The notes beneath the pieces were generated by a model. That model saw nothing but the letters and a program-made list of their open reading frames with translations, searched no databases and was not told the DNA's origin. From sequence record MK599315.1: a DNA stretch of 64,000 nt; one strand, given 5' to 3'. The position numbers and the translations under genes are program-made. Shown here piece by piece: positions 8,373 through 27,969 of this stretch; within the stretch, counting starts at the first letter, position 1, and each line of letters begins with the position of its first letter.

Positions 8373-10655
8373 ATGTCCACCGTTAGTACAACCGGTCTAT
8401 ATGACGAGGATTTGCATGGGACTAACCCAGCTAACCTTATCACAGGGGAAATCCAAACCCTGCAAGTACCCGGCCCTACCGATTACTATTTCATTATTCC
8501 GAAAGCGGCACCTTTCTTTGTCGACTCTCTTAAAGTACGGAACAACCAGACCGGTGCTCTGTTTGTAGAGGGTGTCGATTACATGATCGGTCACCGTTTC
8601 ATCGAAGCAATGGATTCTATTGGTCGACCGATCGCTGGTTCTATCCGCTTCATGAAACGCTCTATCGCCGGTCAAGCACGTCTTGACTATCGGACCATCG
8701 GTGGGCAGTGGGGCTTTAGCGACCAAGCTATTCTGGCGGAACTGTCTCGTCGACAGTATAACCCGCTGATTCGTGCATGGGGTAATATTGATGTACTCCC
8801 TGCCTCGTTCCCACCTCTCGATCACGATCAACCGATCGATAGTCTAGTGGGTTCAGAAGAGATTAATGCTTCTCTTCAACGTCTTGGCGATATCATGGAA
8901 GCAACTGCTTCCGGTACAACCGAGTCGCACTTAAGAGATTTCGATAACCCGCACCGTGTTAATAAGGTACAGGTTCAGCTTGGTAACGTGCCTAACTTCT
9001 CTATGGCGACTGACCAGCAACATAAAGACGGTAATCGTAACGATCTGTTTACGAACCCTCGTGGTGTGATGCTTTCTATTCAAGAGAATGCCCTTAAGCC
9101 TCTTAATGCTCACATTACTGCGACCGGTAACGTTCATGGAATGGTCCCGCGTGACATTGGTCTGGGTAACGTTCCTAACTATCCTGCTGCAACACCACAA
9201 CAGGCTGTTGATCCGACTAACAATAGTACCTTGATGACTCCGTATACGGTGTCTCTGCTTATTCAAGCCGTTCAAGGTGATCCTCGTCTTGATCAATTAA
9301 TCATTGACTTCAATAAACACCTTACCGATACTAACCCGCACAATATCACTCCTGGTCTAATTGGTACTTATACCAAGCAAGAAATTGATCAGAAGATTTC
9401 GGCTGGTGGAAGTGGTGGTGATGCTACTACCTTTGGTGGTGAAACACCTGAGGAATGGGAAGCTAAATTCCCAGCTAATAGCGATATCAATGGGATCATG
9501 TCGGAAGTGACTGAGAAGATCGCTGAAGGTATTGCATCTTCAGCTGACATCAGCTTTAATGATCCGACTCCTCCAGACGAACAAGATAAACAGCGACTGA
9601 GTAAGATTCAAGGCGTACAAGCCGGTGCTGCTGCGTATGCATTGTTCAATGGATCGGGTGATACAGTTTATCGTTCCGAGCCAGGTGGAGCAGATGCTTA
9701 TCCAAAAACTCCAATTCATGGAGCAGCTTGGTCGTGGCTAAGTCTACAAGATGCAGATTATCACCTAGTCCCAGCGGTACGTGACTTCCAGTCCGGTACT
9801 TGGTCTCAAGGTGATGGTATCCGTGCAGCGGGTTCTGCTAAGCTGGCTATCCCGGCAGGTTGGGCGGCAGGCGCTGGTTTCAATCAGGCGAATGCAATGG
9901 TTGCTATGTGGGGTTCTAAGACAGCTCTATATGTTCAACTGAAGCCCAGTGATGGTGCAGACGAAGGTAAGATCATGAAGATCGCCGGCGGCACTGTAAC
10001 TCAACTGTACGCTGAATCTGATAACGTTACTGAGATGTGGGTTGCGACTGAGGATGAAGATTCTCGTCAAATGGCAATTGTTGAAAAGTCTCCGCCTTCT
10101 GGTGATCCGACTTATACAGCAATAGGTGCCAGTGACTGGGTTTCGGCTGCTACTCCAGTTATCGCAGCACAATTGACCGGTGGGTGGGAAATCTCTGATA
10201 TCCGGATTGGTTCTAAGTATCTCGTGTTCCAAGGTGGTAATACCACCAGCGGGAATGCTAGTCGAATCCGTGTATATGAGATTACATATACACCTACGTT
10301 CAAGTTGACTGAAGTCACTTCTACTCTCGATGTCTGGTCGGCTAAAGATAACCGTCTAGTCAAAGCAAATACCCTAACCGATGTAAGTTCTATCTCTGGT
10401 AACTACGGACACCATGCTGTTCAAATTAGACGTGATCCGTCCAGCCTTGAGAATATGGATACTGATATCGCTATGTTCGGTTCCAATGAGAATGGACAGT
10501 TAGAAATTCCTTACGGGTCAGCACCTTTCTATAGTGCGGCTGCTGGTAAAGGTTTCACTGTTACTGTCAATAATCTTGGTTACACTGAATTCTGGGGTGA
10601 CTCTCCGACCAATGCTCTCATCTGGAATGATGGGACGACTATTGTCGCACCCTAA
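8373..10655 (+). CDS. tail tip/fibre protein (phiKZ gp131-like), probable C-terminal beta-propeller
   Basis: 760 aa; N-terminal domain shared with downstream paralogues; H-x-x-D-x-x-NPH-x-V...LGNV repeats; C-terminal blade/RCC1-like text (MFGSNENGQL). Confidence 0.75.
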   Translation: MSTVSTTGLYDEDLHGTNPANLITGEIQTLQVPGPTDYYFIIPKAAPFFVDSLKVRNNQTGALFVEGVDYMIGHRFIEAMDSIGRPIAGSIRFMKRSIAGQARLDYRTIGGQWGFSDQAILAELSRRQYNPLIRAWGNIDVLPASFPPLDHDQPIDSLVGSEEINASLQRLGDIMEATASGTTESHLRDFDNPHRVNKVQVQLGNVPNFSMATDQQHKDGNRNDLFTNPRGVMLSIQENALKPLNAHITATGNVHGMVPRDIGLGNVPNYPAATPQQAVDPTNNSTLMTPYTVSLLIQAVQGDPRLDQLIIDFNKHLTDTNPHNITPGLIGTYTKQEIDQKISAGGSGGDATTFGGETPEEWEAKFPANSDINGIMSEVTEKIAEGIASSADISFNDPTPPDEQDKQRLSKIQGVQAGAAAYALFNGSGDTVYRSEPGGADAYPKTPIHGAAWSWLSLQDADYHLVPAVRDFQSGTWSQGDGIRAAGSAKLAIPAGWAAGAGFNQANAMVAMWGSKTALYVQLKPSDGADEGKIMKIAGGTVTQLYAESDNVTEMWVATEDEDSRQMAIVEKSPPSGDPTYTAIGASDWVSAATPVIAAQLTGGWEISDIRIGSKYLVFQGGNTTSGNASRIRVYEITYTPTFKLTEVTSTLDVWSAKDNRLVKANTLTDVSSISGNYGHHAVQIRRDPSSLENMDTDIAMFGSNENGQLEIPYGSAPFYSAAAGKGFTVTVNNLGYTEFWGDSPTNALIWNDGTTIVAP

Positions 10656-10666
10656 GGAGATTTAAG

Positions 10667-10990
10667 ATGGCTATGACAGTATTTCGTGTCGAACTCGATA
10701 AGCTGAAAGGCAATATCGGTCAGTTTAACAACATCATTCTCAACCTGCTCCGTAGTGCTCGGGACCGTATGAACGCACACATCCTTGAAAAAGGTAACGT
10801 TCATGGACTTGAGCCTATGGATATCGGTTTGGGTAATGTCCCCGACTGGCTACCGGCACAGCAATCACAAGCTAAGGGTGGCACGAACAACTCTTCGTTC
10901 ATGACACCTAAACGGGTAGACAACTACGCTGAGGAGAATATCTTCAAAGCGATAGAGAAAGTGTTTAACGACGCTTACGATCGTTTGTAA
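10667..10990 (+). CDS. short tail-fibre-family protein (gp132-like)
   Basis: 107 aa with one GNVHG..DIGLGNV..SFMTP repeat homologous to the gp131-like repeats. Confidence 0.75.
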   Translation: MAMTVFRVELDKLKGNIGQFNNIILNLLRSARDRMNAHILEKGNVHGLEPMDIGLGNVPDWLPAQQSQAKGGTNNSSFMTPKRVDNYAEENIFKAIEKVFNDAYDRL

Positions 10991-11067
10991 CCTACCCTGG
11001 CAACGGATGGAATCACTGTGTGTAAAAGCACGGTGGTTCCGTCTTTTGTTCAATTTGGAGAATTTAA

Positions 11068-12435
11068 ATGTCCGATGTAATCGTACAACTACCGTTAGAT
11101 AAGACCGGACGTGATCCGAATAACCTGGTAGGTAGCGAAGAAGCAACTCTTACCCCTATCTCGGGGTTCCCGTTTAAAATGGTAACCATGTATCACGGCG
11201 GCTTCTATGTTAATAGCCTTCGTGTATATGACTCTCGTTACATTCCTTTGGTTCGTGATAAAGATTACATTGTCACGTATTACCATAAACAAGCCAGTGA
11301 GTTCTATGGACTTGATATTGCTAGCGGTATTGTTTTCTTAGATCGTACTCGCACTGGTAAAGTTTACATGTCCGCCCAGATGGTCGGTGGAGATGTTGCA
11401 TTTAGTTTCACAGTCATCGACGATTATGTAAACTTCTGGAAAACTAAGCCTTCTGACTATATTCCTAAATGGCTTGATTATAACGGCACTGAACCGATTT
11501 ATGGTCCTGGCGAGTTAGCTGCCCTACGCTGGCGCTTGGATACATATCAGCCGTTTAACAACGAGATTGAGAATATCTCTCGGGCAATCACTGGCCAACT
11601 TGGTAATACAGAAGCAGAGTTCCGTGTTGATGTAAAAGCTGAATATGATCGTTTCTTACAACGTTTCAATAATCGCCTCGATCTGCACATTCAAGATAAA
11701 GAAAACCCACACGTTGACACAAAAGAACATGTAGGTTTAGGTCTTGTAGAAAACTACCGCGTAGCGAGTCTTGCAGAGGCTACAGCAGGTATATCGAACG
11801 AACTCTATCTTACCCCACAGCTTTCGGCTGCGGAAGTAAATAAGATCGGTGGAGATCCACTACAGGCCCACATCGATGCACGTGGCAACGTTCATGGCGT
11901 CACTAATGCACAGTTGAATACCAATAGCAAGCAAGAAGTAAATACTCTGGCTAATACCAAGTATCTGAGAAATGAAGTTGTTGAAAACTCTAACCTCGGA
12001 TTTTGGTTAAACCAGGATATGACGTATAACCAAATTCTACAGTTGTATCGTAAAGACATTCCTGCAAATGCTTTTACTAACTATGATCAAGGCAAGCTTC
12101 CTCTTGGTCGATTAGGTCGTGGTGTTCTGAATAATCGTGCTGTTCTCGATAACAATCGGAACTGGACTAACATTGATGCCCTGCTATCTCTTCTTCCTCA
12201 AGGTGGCAGTGGAGATGTTGCATTCGCATCTTTCAGTGTCAATATCACTCAGGCGCAAGCCAACGCAATGGTTGCTACAACACCGCCGTTCTCTAACATG
12301 CGTTTGAATAGTATTGTTTTCTATTACATTCGCGAGACTAAGGCATGGGGTTCTGGTAACGGTGCATGGAACGGTGTATATGACATTCTTTACGCTTCTA
12401 TGAATATCCCAGGTCAAGGTTGGGTACCAATCTAA
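11068..12435 (+). CDS. tail fibre paralogue (gp133-like)
   Basis: 455 aa; LPLDKTG..PNN N-terminus, GGFY, QMVGG and NPH repeats. Confidence 0.75.
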   Translation: MSDVIVQLPLDKTGRDPNNLVGSEEATLTPISGFPFKMVTMYHGGFYVNSLRVYDSRYIPLVRDKDYIVTYYHKQASEFYGLDIASGIVFLDRTRTGKVYMSAQMVGGDVAFSFTVIDDYVNFWKTKPSDYIPKWLDYNGTEPIYGPGELAALRWRLDTYQPFNNEIENISRAITGQLGNTEAEFRVDVKAEYDRFLQRFNNRLDLHIQDKENPHVDTKEHVGLGLVENYRVASLAEATAGISNELYLTPQLSAAEVNKIGGDPLQAHIDARGNVHGVTNAQLNTNSKQEVNTLANTKYLRNEVVENSNLGFWLNQDMTYNQILQLYRKDIPANAFTNYDQGKLPLGRLGRGVLNNRAVLDNNRNWTNIDALLSLLPQGGSGDVAFASFSVNITQAQANAMVATTPPFSNMRLNSIVFYYIRETKAWGSGNGAWNGVYDILYASMNIPGQGWVPI

Positions 12436-12445
12436 AGGAATCAAC

Positions 12446-13852
12446 ATGAACCCATTACTTCACGCTCTTCCCTACGATGGGACGGGCACTTGTTTCAATA
12501 ACCGCACGCGTGGAGAATACCACAACTTGGCAGATCAAGCTGGTCTGCCATATCGGGTGATTGTTCTGGATAAAGGTTACTTCTACAATAACAATTTGCA
12601 CATGATCGATGGTCGTGGCTATGTGTTAAAAGAGAAGGACGATTTCCAATGCACTCAGATGCATCCAGAGATTACTAAGAAGACTGGCATTCCAGCTTTT
12701 GCAGTTATTGTCATTAAGAACCCACGGGTTCACCATGAGATCAGGGTTGATGCCCAGATGGTCGGTGGTGTTTACTGTAATCTTGGTAAAGCAATCGCTA
12801 ACCAAGCACTCGGGTTGATCAACAATACTCGGAAGATTCATTGGAACAATATTACTGGTAAACCGGATGATTACAAACCCAACGGTCACCTACATGCGCT
12901 GTGGGAACTTTACGGGTTTACGCCTCAAGTATTACTACTTAAGCGAATTACTGCCGCCGGTGAAAAGTTCGTAAAGAAAGACATGGATGCTTTGTTTGAC
13001 CAATATAAAGCCGAGCTTGCTTTAGTTGGAGATGAACTTACTTCCATTGAGCAACGTCTTACTACCCACATTAACGATCGTAATAACCCGCACAAACTCA
13101 CTGCCGCTAAAGTTCAGCTGGATAAAGTGAAGAATGCTGCTATTGCTACGAAAGATCAAGCTGAAGCAGCTAACGGGGATATTCTGGATCGTTACGCTAC
13201 GCCATTACGAGCTAAGCAAAGTATCGACAAGAACTTCTTACCGATTCTACAGGCGCACGTTGATGACCGTAATAACCCACACAAAGAGACAGCTGCTAAA
13301 CTTGGTACGTATACCGTTCAAGAACATCAGCAAGTTGCTGGGAACTATTACAACCGTGGTGAAACCGTTAACAGTACCGAACGTATTGGTGGCGTTAAAG
13401 ATGCCAACAACAATACGACTAGCAATGGCATGACTTTCCAAGAGCTTTACGAGTTCACTCGTCAGGATGAAATCCTTGGACAGCTGAAGACTGGTTTGCT
13501 GCCACCGCAAACTTTTGCAAGTGGGGCTATTCCACCTGCTAACAACTACGCGTTCCTTGTTCCTGCTTCTGCTGATGCAGCAAGCTGGCTTCATTGGATC
13601 GATATCCAAACAGCATGGATCGATAAACCAAAGAGCGTTATTTATGCGGCAGGGTCATTTGATCCTAACGGTGCAAACGCTGAAGCTCAGTTGAACAACG
13701 TGCTAGGTAGGAACCACCCTGCTGGTACAACGGCCATCTTCCGTTATCTTGGTGGCTGGGGTATCGGTACTGGTAACGGTGCAATCACAACGTATATTAA
13801 CTCCGTTGGTTTCGCTGTATTTAATACATCGTTAAATTCCTGGAAGGTATAA
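12446..13852 (+). CDS. tail fibre paralogue (gp134-like)
   Basis: 468 aa; LPYDGTG, GYFY, QMVGG, W..I.GKP..Y.P..H.H and NPH repeats. Confidence 0.75.
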   Translation: MNPLLHALPYDGTGTCFNNRTRGEYHNLADQAGLPYRVIVLDKGYFYNNNLHMIDGRGYVLKEKDDFQCTQMHPEITKKTGIPAFAVIVIKNPRVHHEIRVDAQMVGGVYCNLGKAIANQALGLINNTRKIHWNNITGKPDDYKPNGHLHALWELYGFTPQVLLLKRITAAGEKFVKKDMDALFDQYKAELALVGDELTSIEQRLTTHINDRNNPHKLTAAKVQLDKVKNAAIATKDQAEAANGDILDRYATPLRAKQSIDKNFLPILQAHVDDRNNPHKETAAKLGTYTVQEHQQVAGNYYNRGETVNSTERIGGVKDANNNTTSNGMTFQELYEFTRQDEILGQLKTGLLPPQTFASGAIPPANNYAFLVPASADAASWLHWIDIQTAWIDKPKSVIYAAGSFDPNGANAEAQLNNVLGRNHPAGTTAIFRYLGGWGIGTGNGAITTYINSVGFAVFNTSLNSWKV

Positions 13853-15217
13853 ATGAACGATATTACTTTTCTTGAGCTTGACCTTACCGGTGAAGATCCA
13901 GATAACTGGATTAAAGGTGAGGAACACACTCTAATTCAAGTTCCTGGTAAGAAGCATCGCGTATTCGTTTGTACCCATGGCGGTTTCTATACGAATGGCT
14001 TTGTACTGAGGGACTCTACTGGTAAAGCTCTTGTGCGTGGTAAAGACTATGTTCTAACGTATCACTACGAAAAGCTTTCTGAAATGACTGGTCAAAATGT
14101 GATGGGTCTCGTTGTTATCATCAACGCCTCCGTCACACCAGTCGTTCGTGCGGAATATCATGCAGTGGGTGGATTCTTTAGTGTTTCTGTAAAAGAACTT
14201 AAAGCACTAATGGAGAAGATAGATGAGACTAATCTTAAGTTTACTTGGGAAGAAATCATCGGTAAACCAACTGCATATACTCCATCAGAACACATGCACA
14301 AATATTGGCAGTTGTATGGTCTTGAATCCACGGTTGTCAATATTAACCGTTTAGGTGATGCATGGGCAGTGGGTCGAACTGCAATTCTAGCGGCTGGTAC
14401 GGATTATTACAAATATTACGTTCAGCTTGCGAAAGACGATGTGCAGAATTATATCAACCGTGTGAACGCTCACATAACCGATGAAAATAATCCGCACTCT
14501 TCGGATAAGGTAAAGATTAAGCTTGGGCAAATTAACAACTGGCCAATGGCTACAAAAGCTCAGACAACAGATACTAGCCTAACCAATGTGTATATGCCGA
14601 TTGGTGGTATTTTCAATCTGATCCAATCCATTTTGATTCCAAAGATTACAGATCACATTCGTAATCAAAATAACCCTCATGGGTTAACACTGGCGATCAT
14701 GAACTTGTACAGTAAAGCTGAAATCGATGCTATTTATGCACAACGGCTTCACCGTACACAACGCGCATTTACATCTAAACGGTTGGCTGGGGTTGGTTGG
14801 GAACAATTGTATTTCCCTGCACGAGTTGACCTAGATGCTAGTAACGTTTGGAATATCACTCGCTTTGAATTAAAGCAATTCGTTACGACTTTCCCAACTC
14901 CATGGCCTCCTACTGGAACTGATCCTCAAGGTCGTCCAAATATCCCGTCTGACTACTGCATTATGGGTAATGGACAAATCGTTCACTTCCGTGATCTATT
15001 TGCGACTTATAATGCCAATGCACGTGGGCACTATTATGCTGGTGGACGTTATGCTAGCGCTCAAGCTGCTATCAGTGCTCTCCAGGCAAATATCTCGCAG
15101 ATTGCTGATGGTGGTTATGGATTTGCTCAATACTTGCTGGACTTCAACAATGGTCGCAAAATGCCAACAATGGTTGTAATGCGCCGTAACGGTAGTAGTC
15201 TCACTCGAATCGTCTAA
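13853..15217 (+). CDS. tail fibre paralogue (gp135-like)
   Basis: 454 aa; LELDLTG..PDN, HGGFY, AVGG, WEEIIGKPTAYTPSEHMH and NPH repeats. Confidence 0.75.
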   Translation: MNDITFLELDLTGEDPDNWIKGEEHTLIQVPGKKHRVFVCTHGGFYTNGFVLRDSTGKALVRGKDYVLTYHYEKLSEMTGQNVMGLVVIINASVTPVVRAEYHAVGGFFSVSVKELKALMEKIDETNLKFTWEEIIGKPTAYTPSEHMHKYWQLYGLESTVVNINRLGDAWAVGRTAILAAGTDYYKYYVQLAKDDVQNYINRVNAHITDENNPHSSDKVKIKLGQINNWPMATKAQTTDTSLTNVYMPIGGIFNLIQSILIPKITDHIRNQNNPHGLTLAIMNLYSKAEIDAIYAQRLHRTQRAFTSKRLAGVGWEQLYFPARVDLDASNVWNITRFELKQFVTTFPTPWPPTGTDPQGRPNIPSDYCIMGNGQIVHFRDLFATYNANARGHYYAGGRYASAQAAISALQANISQIADGGYGFAQYLLDFNNGRKMPTMVVMRRNGSSLTRIV

Positions 15218-15229
15218 AGGAAATTACAC

Positions 15230-15826
15230 ATGTTCGATTTTCATAATGTACCAGAACCTGAAAAGGGTCGTAAACCTGTTGTCCTTTGTTTTAACCGTCT
15301 GAATGGTAAGTTCATCGTTGCTACTTCGATGACTATCGATCAATGCGATCCAGATAACCCAAACGTGATCTATGTTGAAGACAACATGGATCTGTTTAAT
15401 GGTGACCGAGTTGTCGGTGACCTCACCATCAATGACGATGGAACCTGGGAAAAGAACTACTCTATTCTTGGAGAGAACGAAGGTCCTCGTCTGATCTACG
15501 AAGCACAGCTGGACAACCAGATGGCTTACAAGATCACTCAACGTTATCCTGTCGTAGAACAAGTAAACGTGCTTGGGCGTGCAATCGTGGCTCTTGCAGA
15601 GAAGACCGGTCTTGAACTTACTGAACTTAGTGAGATGCTAGACTATATCAAACTCTGTAAAGATACTAGTCGAAATCACAAAGAGTTCTATCAGAATGAT
15701 CCCAACTACGAATACATTACCAATGAGCAAGAAGCCGAAGATCGAGCTGCTACCTTCGAAGGCGGTCTCCATGAACTCATTGGCCCAAGAAACATCGAAG
15801 GCGGTCGTGTTTTCGCAACCAGTTAG
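15230..15826 (+). CDS. hypothetical, possibly a tail-fibre assembly/chaperone-like protein
   Basis: 198 aa directly after the fibres; RYPVVEQVNVL resembles the R..YP...EQL..L motif of fibre-associated small proteins (recalled, unverified). Confidence 0.55.
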   Translation: MFDFHNVPEPEKGRKPVVLCFNRLNGKFIVATSMTIDQCDPDNPNVIYVEDNMDLFNGDRVVGDLTINDDGTWEKNYSILGENEGPRLIYEAQLDNQMAYKITQRYPVVEQVNVLGRAIVALAEKTGLELTELSEMLDYIKLCKDTSRNHKEFYQNDPNYEYITNEQEAEDRAATFEGGLHELIGPRNIEGGRVFATS

Positions 15827-16253
15827 TGAAAGACTGGTGGAGTACTTAAAAGCGCTACCTCGTGCAAGATGGTACAATCGCAAGAAGATAAATAGTATCC
15901 CTACCAAGGGTACAGTGGAAGCAAACTACTGGTTCCTTGGTAATGGTCAGATGCCAAAAGAACTTAGCGATTATCTGTTTGAAATTGCACCAACTATCAA
16001 TGGGATAAAACCCAAAGAAGCATGTGTCAATATGTACGAGGTTGGTTTTGGTATGCCGGAACATATCGACATTGCAATGTATCGATTTAATGTGGTGATT
16101 GCATTGTGTGATAATGGAGATGGACTCGACCTAAATGGTGAGTTCATCCCAGATGTTCCTGGAAGAGCAGTAATCTTTCCAGCTAAAACACCACCGCATT
16201 CTGTACCACCCGTAAAACACCTACGCTTCGTTCTCATCTATCTCTACGAGTAG
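15771..16253 (+). CDS. 2OG-Fe(II) dioxygenase superfamily protein
   Basis: VNMYEVGFGMPEHID (HxD) ... GRAVIFP...PHSVPPV..RFVL (distal His and 2OG-binding Arg). Start chosen at the ATG of MNSLAQE. Confidence 0.8.
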   Translation: MNSLAQETSKAVVFSQPVSERLVEYLKALPRARWYNRKKINSIPTKGTVEANYWFLGNGQMPKELSDYLFEIAPTINGIKPKEACVNMYEVGFGMPEHIDIAMYRFNVVIALCDNGDGLDLNGEFIPDVPGRAVIFPAKTPPHSVPPVKHLRFVLIYLYE

Positions 16254-16260
16254 GACAGAT

Positions 16261-16749
16261 ATGTATAAACATTACGACCCCCTTACCGAAGAGGAAGTAA
16301 CTACTTTAGTAGACCTCTCTCGTAAGGTTAAATATAAAGACTCGTATGGCTCTCGTTGCCGTATCGGTAAGAACAAAACCAAAGCACTGAGTATTTACAA
16401 CTATTCTAAGTGGTTTGATTGGACATCTAAACAACGAGATATCTTCAAGGTTGGTTTTAGTGAAGATATCCAAAATAAAGCTGTTCAAGGTTGGTTCCTA
16501 GATATTCCAGCTGGTCGTGGTTTCCTCGATCAGATGACAACGTGGGTCAATAAAACTGGTGCAGGTACCATCGTCGCAACTGCATTAAAAGATAGACAAG
16601 CCATTCAACTTAATGGACGTTTGATCGAACTTCGTAAAGGTGAACAGATCGCCTTTAACCTTAGTACAGTTCACGCGATTCCTAAATCCGACCATGGTCA
16701 GTTGTGGGCATGTGTAATGATACGTGGTGACTTCCAACAGTACACCTAA
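16261..16749 (+). CDS. degenerate DSBH/2OG-oxygenase-fold paralogue lacking HxD
   Basis: Aligns by eye with the upstream gene (ATALKD..IQLNG..I....G..IAF..ST.HAIP vs VIALCD..LDLNG..I....G..VIF..KT.PHSVP). Confidence 0.6.
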   Translation: MYKHYDPLTEEEVTTLVDLSRKVKYKDSYGSRCRIGKNKTKALSIYNYSKWFDWTSKQRDIFKVGFSEDIQNKAVQGWFLDIPAGRGFLDQMTTWVNKTGAGTIVATALKDRQAIQLNGRLIELRKGEQIAFNLSTVHAIPKSDHGQLWACVMIRGDFQQYT

Positions 16750-16780
16750 CGGCATAAACCTCCCTAACGGGAGGCAAGCC
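16750..16780 (+). terminator. hairpin terminator
   Basis: ggcataaacctccc-taac-gggaggcaagcc right after the stop codon. Confidence 0.65.
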
Positions 16781-16832
16781 AAAAATTCTTACACAATGGT
16801 ACAATGAACTTTCTAAGTCAAGGATTAAAAGA

Positions 16833-17708
16833 ATGGCTAGTAACCCTATCGATCAGCAGATTATCAACGTAGTACGTACGTGCTATGCATCTTATCTGCA
16901 AACTACAAAATATCTCGGTCTATCTCCGTTCCGTGTGATTGCACATACAACTCTGAATGAGAAGTTCGGTGTACAAAATGGCGTAACTCCAGCAGCGGGT
17001 GAAATTCCGAACGTGCGTTATATGGTAATTGGTAACATGGGTCACTACACAATCAAAGCCGCTGATGGCTCCGATGAAGTAGAAAACCGTATTCACCGTT
17101 CTAACCATGCTGCACTTTATAACCATATTCCGTTTGCACTGCGTGAAGTAACTGATGATCTTCCAGCCGCACAACGGGATCGGTTCTGCTTACGTGTTCC
17201 GGAAAAACATAATGGTAAAAACTACGTTGCCTATTATGGAATGCGCATTAACGTTACAGGTGTACAACCACAGCTTCTGGAAATCGAAGTAATTAATGGT
17301 ATTCCAACACCGAAACCGTACACACCAACTGTTGATGATCTTAACCCAGTACCGCCAGCTATTTCGAACAACGGTACAGTTATCGGTTCTAACGTAAATA
17401 TCTCGGCTAGTGCAATTGTTAAGGTAAGTTTGTCTGCTGAAGATATTATCGAGATCACCAATGCGCATCGAATTCGTACTGCATCGACTCGTTCTCCGAT
17501 TATCTCTGAGATCGGCTTGTGTTCTGGTGTTGACCGTAAGGTCGATGCACCCGCCGGTACGGGTGGTTCGTTCCAATATCTCGAAGTAATCGCTTGTCAA
17601 GTTAACGTACATATTGCCACTAACCATCCAATCGGTTATAACTCGAATGGTCTTAATCTGACCTTCGATATTGGTGGCGTTGAGCTACTCTTGGCGACAA
17701 GGCAGTAA
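16833..17708 (+). CDS. virion structural protein (phiKZ gp139-like)
   Basis: 291 aa, high-expression codon bias, synteny. Confidence 0.7.
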
Positions 17709-17738
17709 ACGTAGCTAAGTTCGTATAAGGACTTGGTT

Positions 17739-18305
17739 ATGTTGCAGATGCCTGAAAGCGATGAACCATTCCGTGTTGCTTCGTTCGACCCAGGTTCGTC
17801 TAACTTGGGTCAAGCGTTGTTGGAACATGGCTTTAAGAATGAAGGTGTGGCGGTGAAAACCGCCTATACCTCTGTTCTTAGAGATACTCATCCGGACTAT
17901 TCAATGTTCGGGGAATTGCATGGTAGTCGGGTAGTCCGATTAATGATCATGCGAGATTTGATACTAGACTTCTTAAGGACACATAGACCACATGCTGTTA
18001 TTGTTGAATCTAACTATCTAGGTAGATTTGCCACAAGCTTTGCCGCATTGGTTGAATGTGTTGCCGTTATACGAAGTGCTCTTTTTGAGTATGACCCTTT
18101 TATACCGCTTTACATGGTTGACCCTACAACAGTTAAAACCAACGTGGGTATGAAGAAAATTAAGGGTACAGACAAAGAAGATGTGCGACGTGCATTGGTA
18201 AGTAGACCCGATGTTGTTTGGGGTGATGTTGACCATAATCAACTAGATGAACACTCCATCGATGCTGTAGCAATCGGTTACTATTTCCTTACACAGTTGT
18301 TCTAG
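17739..18305 (+). CDS. ruvC: RuvC-like Holliday junction resolvase
   Basis: RVASFDPGSSNLG (D), AVIVES (E), PTTVK..VG, K.DV, DEHSIDAVAIG (D..D): the RuvC catalytic pattern. Confidence 0.8.
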   Translation: MLQMPESDEPFRVASFDPGSSNLGQALLEHGFKNEGVAVKTAYTSVLRDTHPDYSMFGELHGSRVVRLMIMRDLILDFLRTHRPHAVIVESNYLGRFATSFAALVECVAVIRSALFEYDPFIPLYMVDPTTVKTNVGMKKIKGTDKEDVRRALVSRPDVVWGDVDHNQLDEHSIDAVAIGYYFLTQLF

Positions 18306-22086: not shown

Positions 22087-22177
22087 GCTAAAATAATACA
22101 CTACTCTATGAGTCTTATTTTCCTTTTAAGACGTGCACGAGTAGTTGCGAAGACTCTCTCCAACAAAGGAATACGTA

Positions 22178-24646
22178 ATGGCCATTAAATCCAGTCCGGG
22201 TATGATCTCCGGAATGCAGCCTCTTAACACCATCACAGGTGAAGAGTTTGTAGAAGTTATCCGTCTTGAGGCAGATGGTTCTTATAAGAACTTCCGTCTC
22301 ATGGTTTCTAAAATCCGTAACAATGAAGGCCTATCGGCTTATGAAGTTGCGGTAAAGAATGGTTTCGTAGGCACTGAAACTGAGTGGCTCGAAAGTCTAA
22401 AAGGTCAAGGTATTTATCAGCTGGCTCTTCAACAGGGCTTCGTAGGTACTGAAGACGAATTCCTCGCCTCTCTTAAAGGCGAAGACGGCGCAGATGGCGC
22501 TGTAGGTAAATCCATCTATGAAGTTGCCGTAGATAACGGCTTCACTGGCACTGAACAAGAATTCCTTGCAACTCTCGTCGGTAAGTCTGCCTATCAATCC
22601 GCTCTTGATACTGGTTTTACCGGTACCGAGGCCGAGTTCATCCAGTCCCTAAAAGGTGACAAAGGCGATGCCGGCGAGAAAGGTGATAAGGGTGATAAAG
22701 GCGACCAGGGTGATCAAGGTAAGTCCGCTTACGATCTAGCTGTCGAAGCTGGTTTCACTGGAACCGAAGCTGAGTACCTGGAATCTCTCCACGGTATCGA
22801 CGGTACTAAAGGTGATGACGGTATCGATGGCGCTGACGGCAAATCTGCTTACGAGCTAGCCGTAGCAGCCGGTTTCGTTGGTACTGAAGAAGAATATCTC
22901 GAAAGCCTACACGGAGCTGATGGTAAGTCTGCTTATCAGATCGCTCGTGATAATGGTTTCGTTGGTACTGAAGAACAATGGCTGGAAAGCCTAGAAGGCG
23001 CTAATGGTAAGTCCGCATACGAATCCGCTGTTGATGGTGGATACGTTGGTACTGAAGAAGAATTTAACCTGTCGCTTGCCGAACCGAAAGGTGTAAATGG
23101 TGGCGTATTCATCACTGATATCACTCCGGTTAATGCCGCTGATAACGTCGGTGAGAAGGTTAAGTCCGCGGATAGTTTCTCTCTGGTGCAATGTTCTTCG
23201 TCTACTCGTGACGTTAAAGTTAAAGTGGCTGCTATTACCGGTCATACTAACTATCGTCCTGTCGTTAAAGTTAACGGCGTAGATGTATCTCTCGTCGCTG
23301 GTGCAAATGCCCCGATGTGGACCGGTGAAGTAACTATTAATCTGCCTGAGCCGGTTGGTAGTGATCCCATTAAGGTCGAAGCTGTTCACGAAGATGGTGC
23401 TAAGGCATCTACTGATGTAATCATGGATACCGCGCCGGTTGTAACTGCGGCTACATTTACAGGTGAATATCCTGGTTCTCAAACCGAGCTGAAAGCAGGC
23501 GACACAATGTCGATCACTTTCACCACTGACCAAGATGTGGTAGGTTATGAGATTCGTGATGAAGGTGCATTCGTAGCACGCAATGGTACACTGACTGCTG
23601 GTAAGACTCACAGTCTGACTGGTCTGGTTATTGCTGACCGTGGTAACACTGCTACTAACCAACCGTTCAGTATCCGCGTTAAGAAAGCCTCCGGTAGTTT
23701 CTCCGCGTGGTATAAGTCCGACGTAGCTGGTACTACTGAGAAAGTCAACGTTGTCAAGCTGAACAACCTGAAACCGACGATTACATTCGGTGCTGTAACT
23801 TATCCGGCTGGTCAAACTGCCATTAAAGCTGGTGAAGATGCAACCGTTGCTAACACTGTAACTAACGCTACTAGCGCTACTTACACCTCGGCTAATGGTC
23901 AGCTGACTGTAACTAACCCGACTCAGATTGAAGCAAACAAAACTGTTTCTTACCTGACTGGTAATTACAACGACCTGACTAATAACCTGACAATCACTGC
24001 GCAACGTGCTGCTAACGGTAGTTCGTCTACTGCATCGACAATCGTTAAGATTGCTAACGGTGCCCCTGAACTGACTGTTACCACTCCTGCCACTCGTCTG
24101 CGCTCTGGTGGTAATGCAGGTACTGTTGTACAGCGTCACACCATCACTATCACTTCGACTCAATCGCTGGCTGAAGCCCCTGTGATGACTGCTCCTGGCG
24201 GTAACTGGGATTCTGCTGGTTGGGTGGGTGATGCAGCTAAGAAAGTATGGACACGCACACTGCTCGTTCATGATGATGATGCTAAAGGTATCTTCAACTT
24301 TACCGATGTTGTAGCCAAAGGTCTGGCTGGCGTTACAGTCAATACCCTTAAAGCTGGTGGCGAGTATACCCTTGGTGGCTTCGTTCTTCGTACCATGTCT
24401 ATCGCTGCTTTCCCGAATCGTGAAGGTGCTATTGGTACAGATGTAGTTATGACTGGTAAACTTCGCTGCACTAACCTGTCTAAGGGTGCTAGCGGTTCTC
24501 TTAACTTCACCTATAAAGCTGACGATGCTGATGCTGTAAATACTTACACCATCAAGAATAGCAATAGTTGGTATAACTGCGACGCAGCTAACGCTGTATC
24601 TAACACATCCGGTCTGATGCGCGTCGAACTTGAGGAAGTTGTATAA
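22178..24646 (+). CDS. tail fibre/structural protein (phiKZ gp145-like) with GKSAY-GFxGTE repeats and Ig-like C-terminal domains
   Basis: 822 aa from the ATG after AAGGA; about 9 GKSAY..A...GF.GTE.E.L.SL.G units with short Gly-X-Y runs; Thr-rich beta C-terminus. Confidence 0.8.
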   Translation: MAIKSSPGMISGMQPLNTITGEEFVEVIRLEADGSYKNFRLMVSKIRNNEGLSAYEVAVKNGFVGTETEWLESLKGQGIYQLALQQGFVGTEDEFLASLKGEDGADGAVGKSIYEVAVDNGFTGTEQEFLATLVGKSAYQSALDTGFTGTEAEFIQSLKGDKGDAGEKGDKGDKGDQGDQGKSAYDLAVEAGFTGTEAEYLESLHGIDGTKGDDGIDGADGKSAYELAVAAGFVGTEEEYLESLHGADGKSAYQIARDNGFVGTEEQWLESLEGANGKSAYESAVDGGYVGTEEEFNLSLAEPKGVNGGVFITDITPVNAADNVGEKVKSADSFSLVQCSSSTRDVKVKVAAITGHTNYRPVVKVNGVDVSLVAGANAPMWTGEVTINLPEPVGSDPIKVEAVHEDGAKASTDVIMDTAPVVTAATFTGEYPGSQTELKAGDTMSITFTTDQDVVGYEIRDEGAFVARNGTLTAGKTHSLTGLVIADRGNTATNQPFSIRVKKASGSFSAWYKSDVAGTTEKVNVVKLNNLKPTITFGAVTYPAGQTAIKAGEDATVANTVTNATSATYTSANGQLTVTNPTQIEANKTVSYLTGNYNDLTNNLTITAQRAANGSSSTASTIVKIANGAPELTVTTPATRLRSGGNAGTVVQRHTITITSTQSLAEAPVMTAPGGNWDSAGWVGDAAKKVWTRTLLVHDDDAKGIFNFTDVVAKGLAGVTVNTLKAGGEYTLGGFVLRTMSIAAFPNREGAIGTDVVMTGKLRCTNLSKGASGSLNFTYKADDADAVNTYTIKNSNSWYNCDAANAVSNTSGLMRVELEEVV

Positions 24647-27600
24647 TGGCTGGTGAATCCGCATTTGAAGTTTTCGTTAACGGTGAGTTACCAAAACGTA
24701 TCTCCACCGAAGACAATCCTCTTGAGGTAGTTGCAGGCAAGATCCCGGTTTCGACCGGGGCTGGCCTGGCTACAACTTTCAAAGACCCGACCGAAATCGA
24801 GGGAATGAAAGGTGAGGATGGCGCGGATGGTAAATCCGCTTATCAGCTGGCACTCGATGCTGGCTTTATTGGTACTGAAGCCGAGTGGCTCGAATCGCTG
24901 AAAGGCGAAGACGGCGCTAAAGGTGATACTGGTCTGCAAGGTAATCCTGGTGAACCGGGTCCCGTTACCAATATCAAAGGTACCGTAACTCTTGACGATT
25001 TCGAAACCAACATTGCTCCCATCGATAGTTGGGAATTTGGTGATGCTTGGTTCGTTCGTTCTTCCACTGCTACTGTACTGAAAGTATGGTCTGCCCCAGA
25101 AACCGGTTCGCCGGATGCTGGCCAGTGGATCGACTCCGGTGACATGCGTGGTCCGGAAGGTACTGGTCTTGTTATTCGTGGTCAATGGCCTGATAACCAA
25201 GAACTTCCGCCCTTGGCTGCCAAAGGCGATACCTACGGTTGGAAAAATGCTCTTTACACTTTCATGCTTGTAGCTGGTGAAGAAGATATCTTCCCTGACA
25301 ACTATGCATACATCCAGATCGTGCCGATGGGTCCTGAGGGTCCTAAAGGTGATACTGGTGCCAAAGGTGATAAAGGCGACCGTGGTCTGAAAGGCGACAC
25401 TGGTGCACCTGGTAAGGACGCTACTCCGTTCACTATTAAAGCTGACTTAGCTTCCGAAGATGATCTGCCTCTGGCTGGCGATGCCAAGCCTGAAGAAGCA
25501 TATTCGGTTATGGTTGACGATGTACGCCATCTATTCGTCTTCTCCGTCGATGAAAACCGCTGGATGGATCTCGGTACTTGGCAGGGCCCGAAAGGTGAAC
25601 CTGGTCAAGACGGTATCATCGGTGGCGACGGCCCGAAAGGGGACAAGGGCGATAAGGGTGATAAAGGCGATCCTGGTCAAGATGGTATCGATGGTCAAGA
25701 CGGTGCTCCTGGTGAAAACCTGGAAATCCTCGGTACGTATCCGACCATGGCAGATCTTCTGGCCGCAGGTGCTACTCTTGTCATCAAGAAAGCTTACGCT
25801 GTTCGCGATGTTAACACCCTCTTCTACGTAGCTACTACTCCTGTTACCTCTGAAGGCGACCTGATTAACCTAGGTCAATTCAAAGGTGAGAAGGGCGACA
25901 AAGGAGATAAAGGTGACAAAGGGGATACCGGTGCAAAAGGCGATAAGGGTGACACCGGTGACGGTGGTAAGAACCTGGTTGTCTCCGGTGTTCTTCCTGA
26001 CCTTGCTGCCATTCAAGCCGTACCTGATCCGCAAGAACAGGAAGCTTGGGTAGCTGCCGATAACCGCCACCTCTACATGTTCATTGATGGAACATGGGTT
26101 GACCTTGGTACTCATACTGGCGCCAAAGGCGATAAAGGGGACAAAGGCGATAAGGGTGATACTGGCGCCAAGGGTGACACTGGTGATAAAGGCGACAAAG
26201 GTGATCAGGGTGAAAACTTTGAAATCATCGCTGTTGTTGACACTGTAGGTGAAGTTCCTCCGGCCACTGCCGACAACAAAGGTAAAGCCGTTGTTGTTAA
26301 AGGCGGTGATGTTTATGTAAACATTAGTGGTACTCAGTTCGTATCTGTTGGTCCCATTGGCCAGAAAGGTGATCAGGGTGATCGTGGCGCCTCGATGCGC
26401 ATCGTTGGTGAAGTAGGTTCTGTTGAAGCTCTACCTGAACTGGTAGCCGGTGAAACTGATCCCGCTGATGGCGAGGCGTACATTGTTACCGTTATCCAGG
26501 GTGATGACACCATTAAGGTAATCTACGTAGCTAACCGCTCTACGAATACCTACGATGGTCCGTTCAATATCCAGGGTCCGCAAGGTAACGATGGTCCGCA
26601 GGGTGAAGTAGGTCCTCGCGGTGAAATCGGCCAAGGTATCAAAATTGTTGGCGACTATCCGTCTGAAGCTGCTCTTACAGCTGCTCATCCGACTAGTGCT
26701 ATTGGTGATGCATATTCGGTTGGTCCTGAAAACAGTAAAGAACTGTTTGTTTGGGCTGTCGATGGTGCTGATGATACTGAGAAGTATCTGAACCTGGGTA
26801 GCTTCACCGTTGGCGCCAAAGGCGAAAAAGGTGATAAGGGTGACCAAGGTATTGTTGGTCCTCGTGGTATTCAAGGTGCAAAAGGTGATAAAGGTTCTCG
26901 TTGGGTAATTCTACCGAACGGTGTCGATATCCCGAATAACACTATTGGTACTCAAGATGACTGGTGCCTTGATAAGTCTGGTAAAGTTTGGTATCGTGAC
27001 GCAACTGGCTGGAAAGAATTCATCCAACTTCTGGATGTTCCTGTAGCCGAAGTAGAAACTGCCGATCAGAACAAGAAGATGGTTCGCTATCAACTTGGCT
27101 GGGCACCTCTACTGGTCGATGAAGTGGAAACCCCTGAAGAAGGTGAACAGTATATCCGTAAGGGTAAAGCTGATGGCACCACCGAATGGGCTCCGCTTGA
27201 AGTAGATGCTGTACCAGACGTTCCTACTCCCAACATTGCTCTTGCAATGGTTCGTAAGGACGGTGAGTGGAAACAAGGTGCACCTATTGTCATTGCCAAC
27301 GATGTTGATAAGCATTACGTTCTGAAGGGTAAGGCTAGCTGGGTCGAAACCGATGTCTTTAAAGACGCGGCTAGCGATGGTAAGTCTTACGCTCGTAAGG
27401 ATGGTGCTTGGGCTGCGGTAGTACCTGAAACTACCAATGATGATAAACTGTACGCTCGTAAAACTACTGTTGCTGGCGGGTCCAGCTGGGTAGAGGTACC
27501 GGCTGCAATTATCGCATCGGATGCTCCGGATGCCAAGAACTACACTCGTTCTAACGGTGAGTGGAAAGAACTGGTAACCATTCCGGAACCAGGTATCGAT

Positions 27601-27969
27601 GCTACTAAAGTTTGGGGTCGTCAGACAACTGCTGCTGGTACATCGGCGTGGGTAGAGATCAAGAAAGAATTTGATACCTACTCCCTGCTATCTGGTGCTG
27701 CTCCTGCTGGTAACTTCACCATCACTCCGGCTAACCAACAGTGCTATACTGTTCCATCTACTGCTGCTCGTACTATCACTCTAGGTGATGGTCCGTCTGG
27801 CCGAATGATTACAGCTGTACTGGTTCTAACTGGTACGGTCATTCCGACCTTCAGCGGTAACTTCAAATGGAATGATAACACGGCTCCTGAAGCCGCTGCA
27901 ACCAAGACTGTCATCACCCTTCTGTGGGATGGTAGCGAATGGCTCGGCGCTAAAGGTGCTGGCTACTAA
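24646..27969 (+). CDS. collagen-like tail fibre protein (phiKZ gp146-like)
   Basis: 1107 aa; about 7 Gly-X-Y blocks (GDKGDKGDTG...) separated by repeated small domains; C-terminal foldon-like motifs. Confidence 0.85.
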   Translation: MAGESAFEVFVNGELPKRISTEDNPLEVVAGKIPVSTGAGLATTFKDPTEIEGMKGEDGADGKSAYQLALDAGFIGTEAEWLESLKGEDGAKGDTGLQGNPGEPGPVTNIKGTVTLDDFETNIAPIDSWEFGDAWFVRSSTATVLKVWSAPETGSPDAGQWIDSGDMRGPEGTGLVIRGQWPDNQELPPLAAKGDTYGWKNALYTFMLVAGEEDIFPDNYAYIQIVPMGPEGPKGDTGAKGDKGDRGLKGDTGAPGKDATPFTIKADLASEDDLPLAGDAKPEEAYSVMVDDVRHLFVFSVDENRWMDLGTWQGPKGEPGQDGIIGGDGPKGDKGDKGDKGDPGQDGIDGQDGAPGENLEILGTYPTMADLLAAGATLVIKKAYAVRDVNTLFYVATTPVTSEGDLINLGQFKGEKGDKGDKGDKGDTGAKGDKGDTGDGGKNLVVSGVLPDLAAIQAVPDPQEQEAWVAADNRHLYMFIDGTWVDLGTHTGAKGDKGDKGDKGDTGAKGDTGDKGDKGDQGENFEIIAVVDTVGEVPPATADNKGKAVVVKGGDVYVNISGTQFVSVGPIGQKGDQGDRGASMRIVGEVGSVEALPELVAGETDPADGEAYIVTVIQGDDTIKVIYVANRSTNTYDGPFNIQGPQGNDGPQGEVGPRGEIGQGIKIVGDYPSEAALTAAHPTSAIGDAYSVGPENSKELFVWAVDGADDTEKYLNLGSFTVGAKGEKGDKGDQGIVGPRGIQGAKGDKGSRWVILPNGVDIPNNTIGTQDDWCLDKSGKVWYRDATGWKEFIQLLDVPVAEVETADQNKKMVRYQLGWAPLLVDEVETPEEGEQYIRKGKADGTTEWAPLEVDAVPDVPTPNIALAMVRKDGEWKQGAPIVIANDVDKHYVLKGKASWVETDVFKDAASDGKSYARKDGAWAAVVPETTNDDKLYARKTTVAGGSSWVEVPAAIIASDAPDAKNYTRSNGEWKELVTIPEPGIDATKVWGRQTTAAGTSAWVEIKKEFDTYSLLSGAAPAGNFTITPANQQCYTVPSTAARTITLGDGPSGRMITAVLVLTGTVIPTFSGNFKWNDNTAPEAAATKTVITLLWDGSEWLGAKGAGY

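Follow-up and report, generated by a model that had tools for sequence, protein, structure and literature searches.

The window analysed here is the whole 64,000-nucleotide stretch of record MK599315.1 (Pseudomonas phage PA1C; a window position is the record position minus 124000). At 15230-16749, directly behind five tail-fibre genes, it carries three small open reading frames, ORF1, ORF2 and ORF3, which constitute one co-inherited, horizontally mobile cassette tied to fibre genes and found in three unrelated phage lineages. Judging from sequence and predicted structure, ORF2 is a minimal Fe(II)/2-oxoglutarate (2OG) oxygenase with all the residues for catalysis present, and ORF3 is a degenerate protein of the same fold. 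In the relatives for which data exist, the three products are non-virion proteins made in infected cells. The reading that we favour, to which we give about an even chance, is that of a non-structural cassette that matures tail fibres and in which hydroxylation is an accessory step. The elements of the cassette are the following.

15230 to 15826, plus strand: ORF1, 198 amino acids, homologue of gp136, phrog_13209, adaptor-like or chaperone-like (ORF list, PHROG and the homologues that head other cassettes).
15807 to 16253, plus strand: ORF2, homologue of gp137, predicted minimal Fe(II)/2OG oxygenase (invariant residues, Pfam and predicted fold).
16261 to 16749, plus strand: ORF3, 162 amino acids, homologue of gp138, phrog_14616, predicted double-stranded beta-helix without the full iron triad (model, profile and PHROG).
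16759 to 16774, plus strand: GC hairpin, six-pair stem and four-base loop, no U-tract (folding free energy -14.9 kcal/mol, z -2.7).

The counterparts of ORF1, ORF2 and ORF3 are gp136, gp137 and gp138 of phiKZ, gp221-223 of 201phi2-1 and genes 155-157 of phiPA3, and the middle gene is annotated in the PA1C record as 'similar to PHIKZ137'. Positions 13800-17800 of the window were 100% identical to PA1C and 99% identical to PS119XW (genus Pawinskivirus, phiKZ-like jumbo phage). A collection of 50,697 phage records was searched by tblastn with ORF2, ORF3 and the ORF3 homologue of phage Milchi; each query matched 72 records with an identical host breakdown, all of them Pseudomonas phages, while the more divergent ORF1 matched 24 Pseudomonas phage records belonging to the same lineages. 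Most of the carriers are phiKZ-like (phiKZ, phiPA3, 201phi2-1, Phabio, Psa21, Noxifer, PA1C and close relatives). The others are the 115-kilobase (kb) QdP_Psa3 and the 175-kb Milchi and Astolliot, the gene order around the cassette in the latter two being T4-like, from baseplate wedge to neck. Both of these lineages have a fibre gene followed by homologues of ORF1, ORF2 and ORF3, with pairwise E values of 3e-12 to 4e-32 between PA1C and QdP_Psa3 or Milchi, and in an all-against-all comparison the trio alone was common to the window and the QdP_Psa3 and Milchi loci.

Six metagenomic contigs, reached through divergent relatives of ORF3 and with their genes assigned by profile (E 1e-14 to 1e-45), extended this picture. 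The order ORF1, ORF2, ORF3 was found in L009 (after baseplate genes and a putative fibre of 456 amino acids), in L012 (after a fibre C-terminus) and in L010; in L011 a fibre with a PF12571 domain, which is also present in the fibre upstream of the QdP_Psa3 cassette, is followed by the permuted order ORF1, ORF3, ORF2. L013 (195-1212) carries ORF2 and then two tandem genes of the ORF3 family (profile E 1.6e-45 and 8.7e-41), and the 947-base contig L014 carries ORF1 and then ORF3. In all the loci that include the upstream gene, the cassette is located immediately 3' of a tail-fibre gene. An earlier note on this DNA, made from the letters and the ORF list, had placed an oxygenase pair in the tail-fibre operon, and finding the same cassette behind fibre genes of unrelated phages upholds that linkage. 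The note had also proposed to check whether the neighbourhood is conserved across the Chimalliviridae; the cassette is not a feature of that family, and within the phage collection it is restricted to the 72 Pseudomonas phage records and is spread over three unrelated lineages.

ORF2 was compared with its homologues, 19 sequences with 51-72% identity. The residues H98, D100, H143 and R152 (numbering of the 160-residue form) are invariant in all of them, as are N87 and Y89; the key codons are located at 16062-16064 (H), 16068-16070 (D), 16197-16199 (H) and 16224-16226 (R). The intact HxD...H...R motif that the earlier note had read in this frame is therefore a property of the family, and the H/D/H triad is retained even in the divergent metagenomic homologues of L009, L010 and L011. 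R152 occupies the place of the basic residue that binds the C5 carboxylate of 2OG, expected 9-10 residues past the distal His. PF13640 matched 19/19 members of the family, below or near its threshold (best E 1.3e-5), and some homologues carry a precomputed hit to it; ORF2 of PA1C itself did not reach the PF13640 gathering cut-off (23.3 bits vs 27). PF13532, the AlkB family, matched 10/19 members (best E 4e-4), with 12.6 bits for ORF2 of PA1C against a cut-off of 31.2.

The AlphaFold model of ORF2 had a mean predicted local distance difference test score (pLDDT) of 89.8 and aligned with solved 2OG oxygenases with Z scores of 13.7-15.8 over 139-156 residues. The best matches were the PKHD-type structure 3dkq (15.8), the Pseudomonas putida prolyl 4-hydroxylase (P4H; 15.4), ALKBH6 (15.1), PHD2 (15.1) and PiuC (15.0); the PBCV-1 viral collagen prolyl hydroxylase (vCPH) followed with Z 14.1 and AlkB with Z 13.8, and LH3 and ALKBH5 were also among the structural matches. 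We attempted to assign ORF2 to a subfamily on this basis and abandoned the attempt, PKHD, P4H, PHD2, ALKBH6 and ALKBH5 being all within about 1 Z unit. Protein modification had been preferred to an AlkB-type function in the earlier note; the Pfam comparison leans slightly to the PHD/P4H/PKHD side, but the structural classes are tied.

The relationship between ORF2 and ORF3 was detected at the level of the fold. Their sequences are not significantly similar (BLASTP E 19; hhalign probability 0.8%), so that the 'tandem paralogue' of the earlier note stands as regards fold and not as regards sequence. The AlphaFold model of ORF3 (pLDDT 88.7) presents its secondary-structure elements in the same order as ORF2. 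It aligned with PHD2 at Z 14.4 (root-mean-square deviation 2.6 Å, 139 residues) and with 3dkq at Z 14.0; in a viral library it matched the Psa21 homologue of ORF2 with TM-scores of 0.69/0.74, and the Foldseek E value with PBCV-1 vCPH was 1.9e-5. The catalytic positions were assigned by the register of the predicted secondary structure, not by superposed coordinates, and this register puts F79 in the place of Y89, F88 in that of H98, D90 in that of D100, H138 in that of H143 and Q147 in that of R152. By this assignment ORF3 would lack the first His, the 2OG-binding Arg and the Tyr, and would keep the Asp and the distal His. The earlier note had described the fold and the distal His as kept and HxD and the Arg as lost; the fold, the His and the loss of the Arg agree with our assignment, and the Asp of HxD (D90) is in fact kept. 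That an active enzyme stands beside a copy of its fold whose catalytic site has degenerated is, in general terms, supported by the residues and by the models.

A search of 1.84 billion proteins with the ORF3 family returned 94 clusters, all of the family itself, and no bridge to active enzymes, a few members with a His at position 88 apart. D90, H138 and W149 are nearly invariant over the 94 clusters and position 88 is mostly Phe. This conservation indicates that the pocket is under selection, though it is not a canonical iron/2OG site. Six members of the family (P0086, P0122, P0127, P0132, P0138 and P0158) have a His at position 88, giving HxD...H, with the Arg still missing; they could represent the ancestral state or a reversion.

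In the ORF1 family the N-terminal third varies and the middle is conserved; the C-terminal tail, EGGLHE..GPR..GGRVF, is invariant. Homologues of ORF1 head the cassette in QdP_Psa3, in Milchi and in the loci L009-L012 and L014. The earlier note had called this frame chaperone-like. PF02413 matched 2/23 of the homologues (best E 0.018), which is not significant, and PF16778 appeared as a lead in a protein atlas (feature score 0.88), below any threshold; thus the resemblance to chaperones is sub-threshold, and what is added to the earlier description is that ORF1 is an integral third member of the cassette, more than a neighbour.

The positions given earlier for the three frames (15230-15826, a frame at 15696-16253, and 16261-16749) were reproduced in the ORF list. 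Within the middle frame there are two candidate starts for ORF2, a GTG at 15807 (148 amino acids), preceded by GAAGGCGG, and an ATG at 15771 (160 amino acids), used in the PA1C annotation. The homologues called at 148-150 amino acids start at the equivalent of 15804-15807, which makes the GTG at 15807 the likely start. With either of them ORF2 overlaps the 3' end of ORF1, and the overlap is also present in QdP_Psa3, Milchi, Noxifer, 201phi2-1 and contig L009, which suggests, on the strength of the sequences, translational coupling of the two genes. In the region 15771-15826 the codons for the GGRVF tail of ORF1 double, in another frame, as the likely ribosome-binding site and GTG start of ORF2. 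The gp135-like gene and ORF1 are separated by 12 bases, and the end of ORF2 and the start of ORF3 by 7 bases.

It had been claimed that one terminator closes the unit. The GC hairpin at 16759-16774 is real, with a similar one in Noxifer; as the PA1C hairpin is devoid of a U-tract, it is a putative terminator, and a consensus scan did not call it. Past the stop codon of ORF3 and before the next gene, at 16786-16803, lies a motif close to TGCACAAT-NN-TACA, which is kept in PA1C, phiPA3, 201phi2-1 and Noxifer. As a general promoter consensus, TGCACAAT-NN-TACA was rejected: the window contains one other copy, with one mismatch, no more than expected by chance.

The fibre paralogues in front of the trio, five in number as the earlier note had it, are of the gp131-135 type and occupy 8373-15217.

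8373 to 10655, plus strand: gp131-like protein of the fibre or baseplate periphery, 760 amino acids, first of the five paralogues (ORF list; PA1C annotation 'virion structural protein'; paralogy notes in the 201phi2-1 record).
10667 to 10990, plus strand: gp132-like short paralogue, 107 amino acids (ORF list; PA1C annotation).
11068 to 12435, plus strand: gp133-like fibre paralogue, 455 amino acids, with a C-terminal P/N-x-G/N-S...G-N-G...W module (motif, profile and hhalign).
12446 to 13852, plus strand: gp134-like fibre paralogue, 468 amino acids, with a C-terminal P-x-G-T...G-N-G...W module (motif, profile and hhalign).
13853 to 15217, plus strand: gp135-like fibre paralogue, 454 amino acids, immediately 5' of the cassette (phrog_2163 and tail-fibre PHROGs).

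A strong terminator-like hairpin (17 pairs and a T-run) was observed at 11005-11044, between the gp132-like and gp133-like genes; with it, the five paralogues may not form a single transcription unit.

The fibres that adjoin the cassettes are otherwise unrelated, yet their last 50 residues or so are alike, with the pattern P-x-G-S/T, a hydrophobic strand, G-N-G and a Trp near the end. When the C-termini of the phiKZ-like paralogues were aligned by hhalign with those of five non-phiKZ fibres, a probability of 83.5% was obtained (E 8e-6, 45 columns). A profile was also built solely from the C-termini of the phiKZ-like paralogues and run against 533 control ORFs; profiles were preferred because a strict regular expression missed evident variants of the module. 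The Milchi fibre of 181 amino acids was found with E 4e-4 among the 533 ORFs, the best unrelated ORF reaching 5.9 bits; the L012 fragment scored 17.7 bits, the L011 fibre 10.9 bits and the C-terminus of QdP_Psa3 10.0 bits (domain score). Four of the five non-phiKZ fibres adjacent to a cassette outscored all 533 control ORFs. From these comparisons of sequence, a shared C-terminal module is likely, though not proven. No Pfam family matched the module, and an atlas lead to PF24243 (score 0.83) was not confirmed. For counting the co-occurrence of module and cassette, tblastn with the 94-residue fibre module was too insensitive, phiKZ itself not being reached.

Published data on the trio exist for phiKZ and 201phi2-1, from which all the genetic and proteomic evidence used here was taken; a look for RNA sequencing runs of PA1C returned none. 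According to the notes in the 201phi2-1 record, mass spectrometry of the virion detected gp216-220 and gp224, not gp221-223. The 'experiment' tags of the phiKZ RefSeq record likewise give mass-spectrometric evidence for gp132-135, and for gp136-138 evidence from RNA only. The cryo-electron microscopy atlas of 40 phiKZ proteins does not contain gp136-138, and models the base of the fibre as three copies of gp131 together with gp133, gp134 and gp135 (PMC13250141). In infected cells gp136, gp137 and gp138 were all detected by size-exclusion mass spectrometry (PMC10449902 supplement), and at 15 min their transcripts reached about 1,400-1,800 reads per kilobase per million, comparable to those of the fibre genes (PMC12571901 supplement).

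Transposon insertions in phiKZ separate the oxygenase from its two neighbours. In Supplemental Table 2 of that study gp137 has 577 reads at 2 sites, and gp135, gp136, gp138, gp139 and gp140 have zero; in Table 3 gp137 has 604 reads at 8 sites, gp136 has 4 reads and gp138 has 1 read; and the tail genes without insertions named in its text include gp131-135 (10.1101/2025.11.23.690004). For the three antisense oligomers directed against gp137 the effect column is empty, and gp137 is outside the table of top hits (PMC12571901); it is nevertheless in the RNA-seq set captioned as 56 top hits (PMC12571901 supplement). It appears, then, that gp137 is dispensable on strain PAO1 in rich medium and that gp136 and gp138 are required, like the fibre genes. 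Taking this into account, the essential job of the module is probably non-catalytic.

The mechanism that we propose is as follows. While the fibre is nascent, ORF1 and ORF3 would bind to its C-terminal P-x-G-S/T...G-N-G...W module (in PA1C, that of the gp133-like and gp134-like proteins) and aid the folding or trimerisation of this module, and this chaperone-adaptor step would be the indispensable one for the phage. ORF2 would dock on the complex of ORF1, ORF3 and client and hydroxylate a side chain of the client, our guesses for the target being the Asn of G-N-G and the Pro of P-x-G. The modification may tune fibre stability or receptor binding, which would make it conserved in evolution and dispensable on a laboratory host. 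The hydroxylation, its target residue and the complex of three proteins are what we infer from the evidence above. We also put forward, tentatively and with less confidence, a bolder form of the proposal, in which receptor-binding fibres are hydroxylated by a mobile three-protein system whose dead oxygenase and adaptor act as an indispensable chaperone and whose live oxygenase provides a conditional modification of the module at the fibre tip, for instance at the Asn of G-N-G. If true, this would be without precedent to our knowledge, as we are aware of no earlier description of a system that hydroxylates a phage tail fibre.

Several points weigh against fibre maturation. The gp135-like protein, which is directly upstream of the cassette in the phiKZ-like phages, matches the module weakly and in part (profile E 0.0026, covering no more than its N-terminal half), and the L009 fibre is without G-N-G. 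The similarity among the modules is drawn from short and divergent sequences, the likeness of ORF1 to chaperones is below any threshold, and among the predicted structural neighbours of ORF2 the AlkB type ties with the PHD type within one Z unit. The absence of insertions from gp136 and gp138 could stem from polarity or, as an artefact, from the small size of the genes, and these data are not from PA1C. Finally, the density of the phiKZ fibre was too poor for an atomic model (PMC13250141), and none of the fibres has yielded a hydroxylated residue.

Among the alternatives, it is possible, although we consider it unlikely, that ORF2 acts at the envelope, on the host or on a small molecule (a receptor, lipopolysaccharide, or a component of iron uptake or of a siderophore, as in the case of PiuC and PKHD enzymes), with ORF1 and ORF3 as targeting partners and with adsorption or superinfection control on Pseudomonas accounting for the proximity to the fibres. 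The PKHD-type and PiuC structures among the top neighbours of ORF2 (Z 15.8 and 15.0) and the dispensability of the oxygenase on the laboratory host are in line with it, but gp136 and gp138 appear to be required even on that host. It is also in its favour that all cultured carriers infect Pseudomonas, across three unrelated lineages; a common host, however, eases gene exchange, so that the restriction need not reflect function. The trio are small proteins of cytoplasmic type, in which neither a signal peptide nor a membrane segment was apparent, no search having been made for these, and the position behind fibres sharing a C-terminal module is kept in every lineage.

Less probable in our judgement is that ORF1 and ORF3 form a purely non-catalytic fibre chaperone and that ORF2 is regulatory, hydroxylating either ORF3 or the invariant tail of ORF1, perhaps as a sensor of oxygen or iron, and not the virion. 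The invariant tail of ORF1 ends exactly at the start of ORF2, which would suit such a role, but the conservation of this tail may partly serve the DNA or RNA level, because the ribosome-binding site and start codon of ORF2 overlap there. The pattern of insertions, none in gp136/gp138 and tolerated in gp137, is compatible with this alternative, and the Asp/His/Trp pocket of ORF3 could hold a peptide. There is, however, no evidence for any modification of ORF1, and the intact triad of ORF2 in every lineage examined argues for a selected catalytic role.

We regard it as improbable that ORF2 is an AlkB-like oxygenase of nucleic acids, for repair of DNA or RNA or for base modification, with an incidental position in the late region. 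Profile searches against the sequences of the PDB returned only chance hits (a Sel1 repeat, Rab6) and a weak local resemblance to ALKBH8 (E 0.027), in which the N-x-Y...G-x-G-M-P-x-H-I-D motif of ORF2, with its N-x-Y upstream of HxD, takes part; ALKBH6, ALKBH5 and AlkB are among its structural neighbours (Z 13.7-15.1), and PF13532 was matched by part of the family. PF13640 is nevertheless the better Pfam match, and the second Arg of the AlkB signature R-x-x-x-x-x-R, six residues after R152, is replaced by a Leu invariant in the 19 homologues. A protein of 148-160 amino acids leaves little room for a nucleotide-recognition lid, and the gene is inherited along with ORF1 and a pseudo-oxygenase, behind fibres and, in the loci examined, never beside replication genes. 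The label 'DNA endonuclease', attached to phrog_2297 and spread to RefSeq and to many GenBank records, could be taken as a pointer to nucleic acids; it is unsupported by the fold or the motifs of ORF2.

The earlier note had proposed as a candidate substrate the Gly-X-Y fibre at 24646. Long runs of Gly-X-Y are indeed present in this tail protein of 1107 amino acids (24646-27969), where X-Lys-Gly triplets are numerous and X-Pro-Gly triplets also occur. Collagen-like runs, mostly of G-D-K triplets, were observed both in it (gp146-like) and in the gp145-like tail protein (22145-24646); the PS119XW homologues of the two are labelled 'hydrolase' in RefSeq. We scanned five whole genomes bearing the cassette (PA1C, Noxifer, 201phi2-1, Milchi and QdP_Psa3) for runs of at least 8 Gly-X-Y triplets. 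They were present in PA1C (22 overlapping matches), Noxifer and 201phi2-1. Milchi had no run of at least 8, its sole six-triplet match being a Gly-rich stretch that is not collagen-like. The match in QdP_Psa3 is the opposite, non-coding strand of a gene beside the major head protein (locus L008, record 68320-69498, minus strand), whose product, a hypothetical protein, has a long proline repeat of period 3 (P-x-x). That ORF2 is a prolyl or lysyl hydroxylase of collagen type for the repeats of the 24646-27969 protein is thus the least probable reading, for all that the runs are real, recur in two relatives and find an echo in the structural matches to LH3 and the PBCV-1 collagen prolyl hydroxylase, since Milchi and QdP_Psa3 carry the full cassette without collagen-like repeats, so that the Gly-X-Y fibre is not a general substrate, and the collagen-like gene is 8 kb downstream of the cassette with other genes between.

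The fibre-maturation cassette that we propose can be compared with several known systems. By its position it resembles T4 gp57A/gp38 and the Tfa proteins of P2, Mu and lambda (PF02413), small non-virion proteins encoded right after a fibre gene and serving fibre maturation, although ORF1 shows no significant similarity to PF02413. We know of no fibre chaperone that has an oxygenase fold or is accompanied by an oxygenase. PHD2, Pseudomonas PPHD and the PKHD-type enzymes (PiuC, YbiX) are the best structural neighbours of ORF2 (Z 15.0-15.8) and of ORF3 (Z 13.7-14.4) and share with ORF2 the HxD...H...R arrangement, as well as PF13640, its best Pfam match; ORF2 is 40-80 residues shorter, a length which would leave little room for additional loops that bind substrate. 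The AlkB family has the same fold, the N-x-Y before HxD and a local motif of ALKBH8 type, but ORF2 is without the second C-terminal Arg, its PF13532 match is weaker and sub-threshold, and its context is that of fibre genes. PBCV-1 vCPH is, like ORF2, a small virus-encoded oxygenase of P4H type, and acts on a structural protein of the virus or of its host; it has neither a pseudo-enzyme partner nor an adaptor gene, and collagen repeats do not co-occur with the cassette.

The closest analogy in design is with OGFOD1/Tpa1p/Ofd1, eukaryotic enzymes that hydroxylate a prolyl residue of a ribosomal protein and in which an active PHD-like beta-helix is joined to a second one without metal site, proposed to bind the substrate or a partner (PMC4396695). 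For Ofd1, unassembled uS12 is presented by the fission-yeast adaptor Nro1 (PMC5690285), as we propose for ORF1 and its client. In OGFOD1 both beta-helices are in one eukaryotic polypeptide of 500-plus residues, whereas in the phages they are separate proteins of about 150-160 amino acids accompanied by ORF1; no sequence relationship was detected between the two systems, and the client is uS12 in one and, in our proposal, a tail fibre in the other. Prokaryotic prolyl hydroxylases are stated to be single-domain enzymes (PMC4396695). In the literature searched for gp136, gp137 or gp138, or for an oxygenase beside tail fibres, we found no description of the cassette. Its parts are of known kinds, and the combination of an active and a dead oxygenase, encoded separately, with an adaptor, mobile and tied to fibres, appears to be new.

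Tail fibres set the host range, and the phiKZ-like phages are candidates for therapy as well as the main model of nucleus-forming phages. In the data found, gp136-138 are unnamed or mislabelled, though in phiKZ gp136 and gp138 seem to be needed. A gp137 transposon mutant of phiKZ should exist in the published library, which makes the question directly testable. If the cassette matures fibres, engineering or swapping of module-bearing fibres may need the cassette to be moved along with them. If the proposal is true, the cassette would be the viral counterpart, divided over three genes, of the OGFOD1/Ofd1-Nro1 system, the pseudo-oxygenase acting as a chaperone would be a new use of the fold, and adsorption may be tied to the physiology of the host through a fibre modification that depends on oxygen, iron and 2OG.

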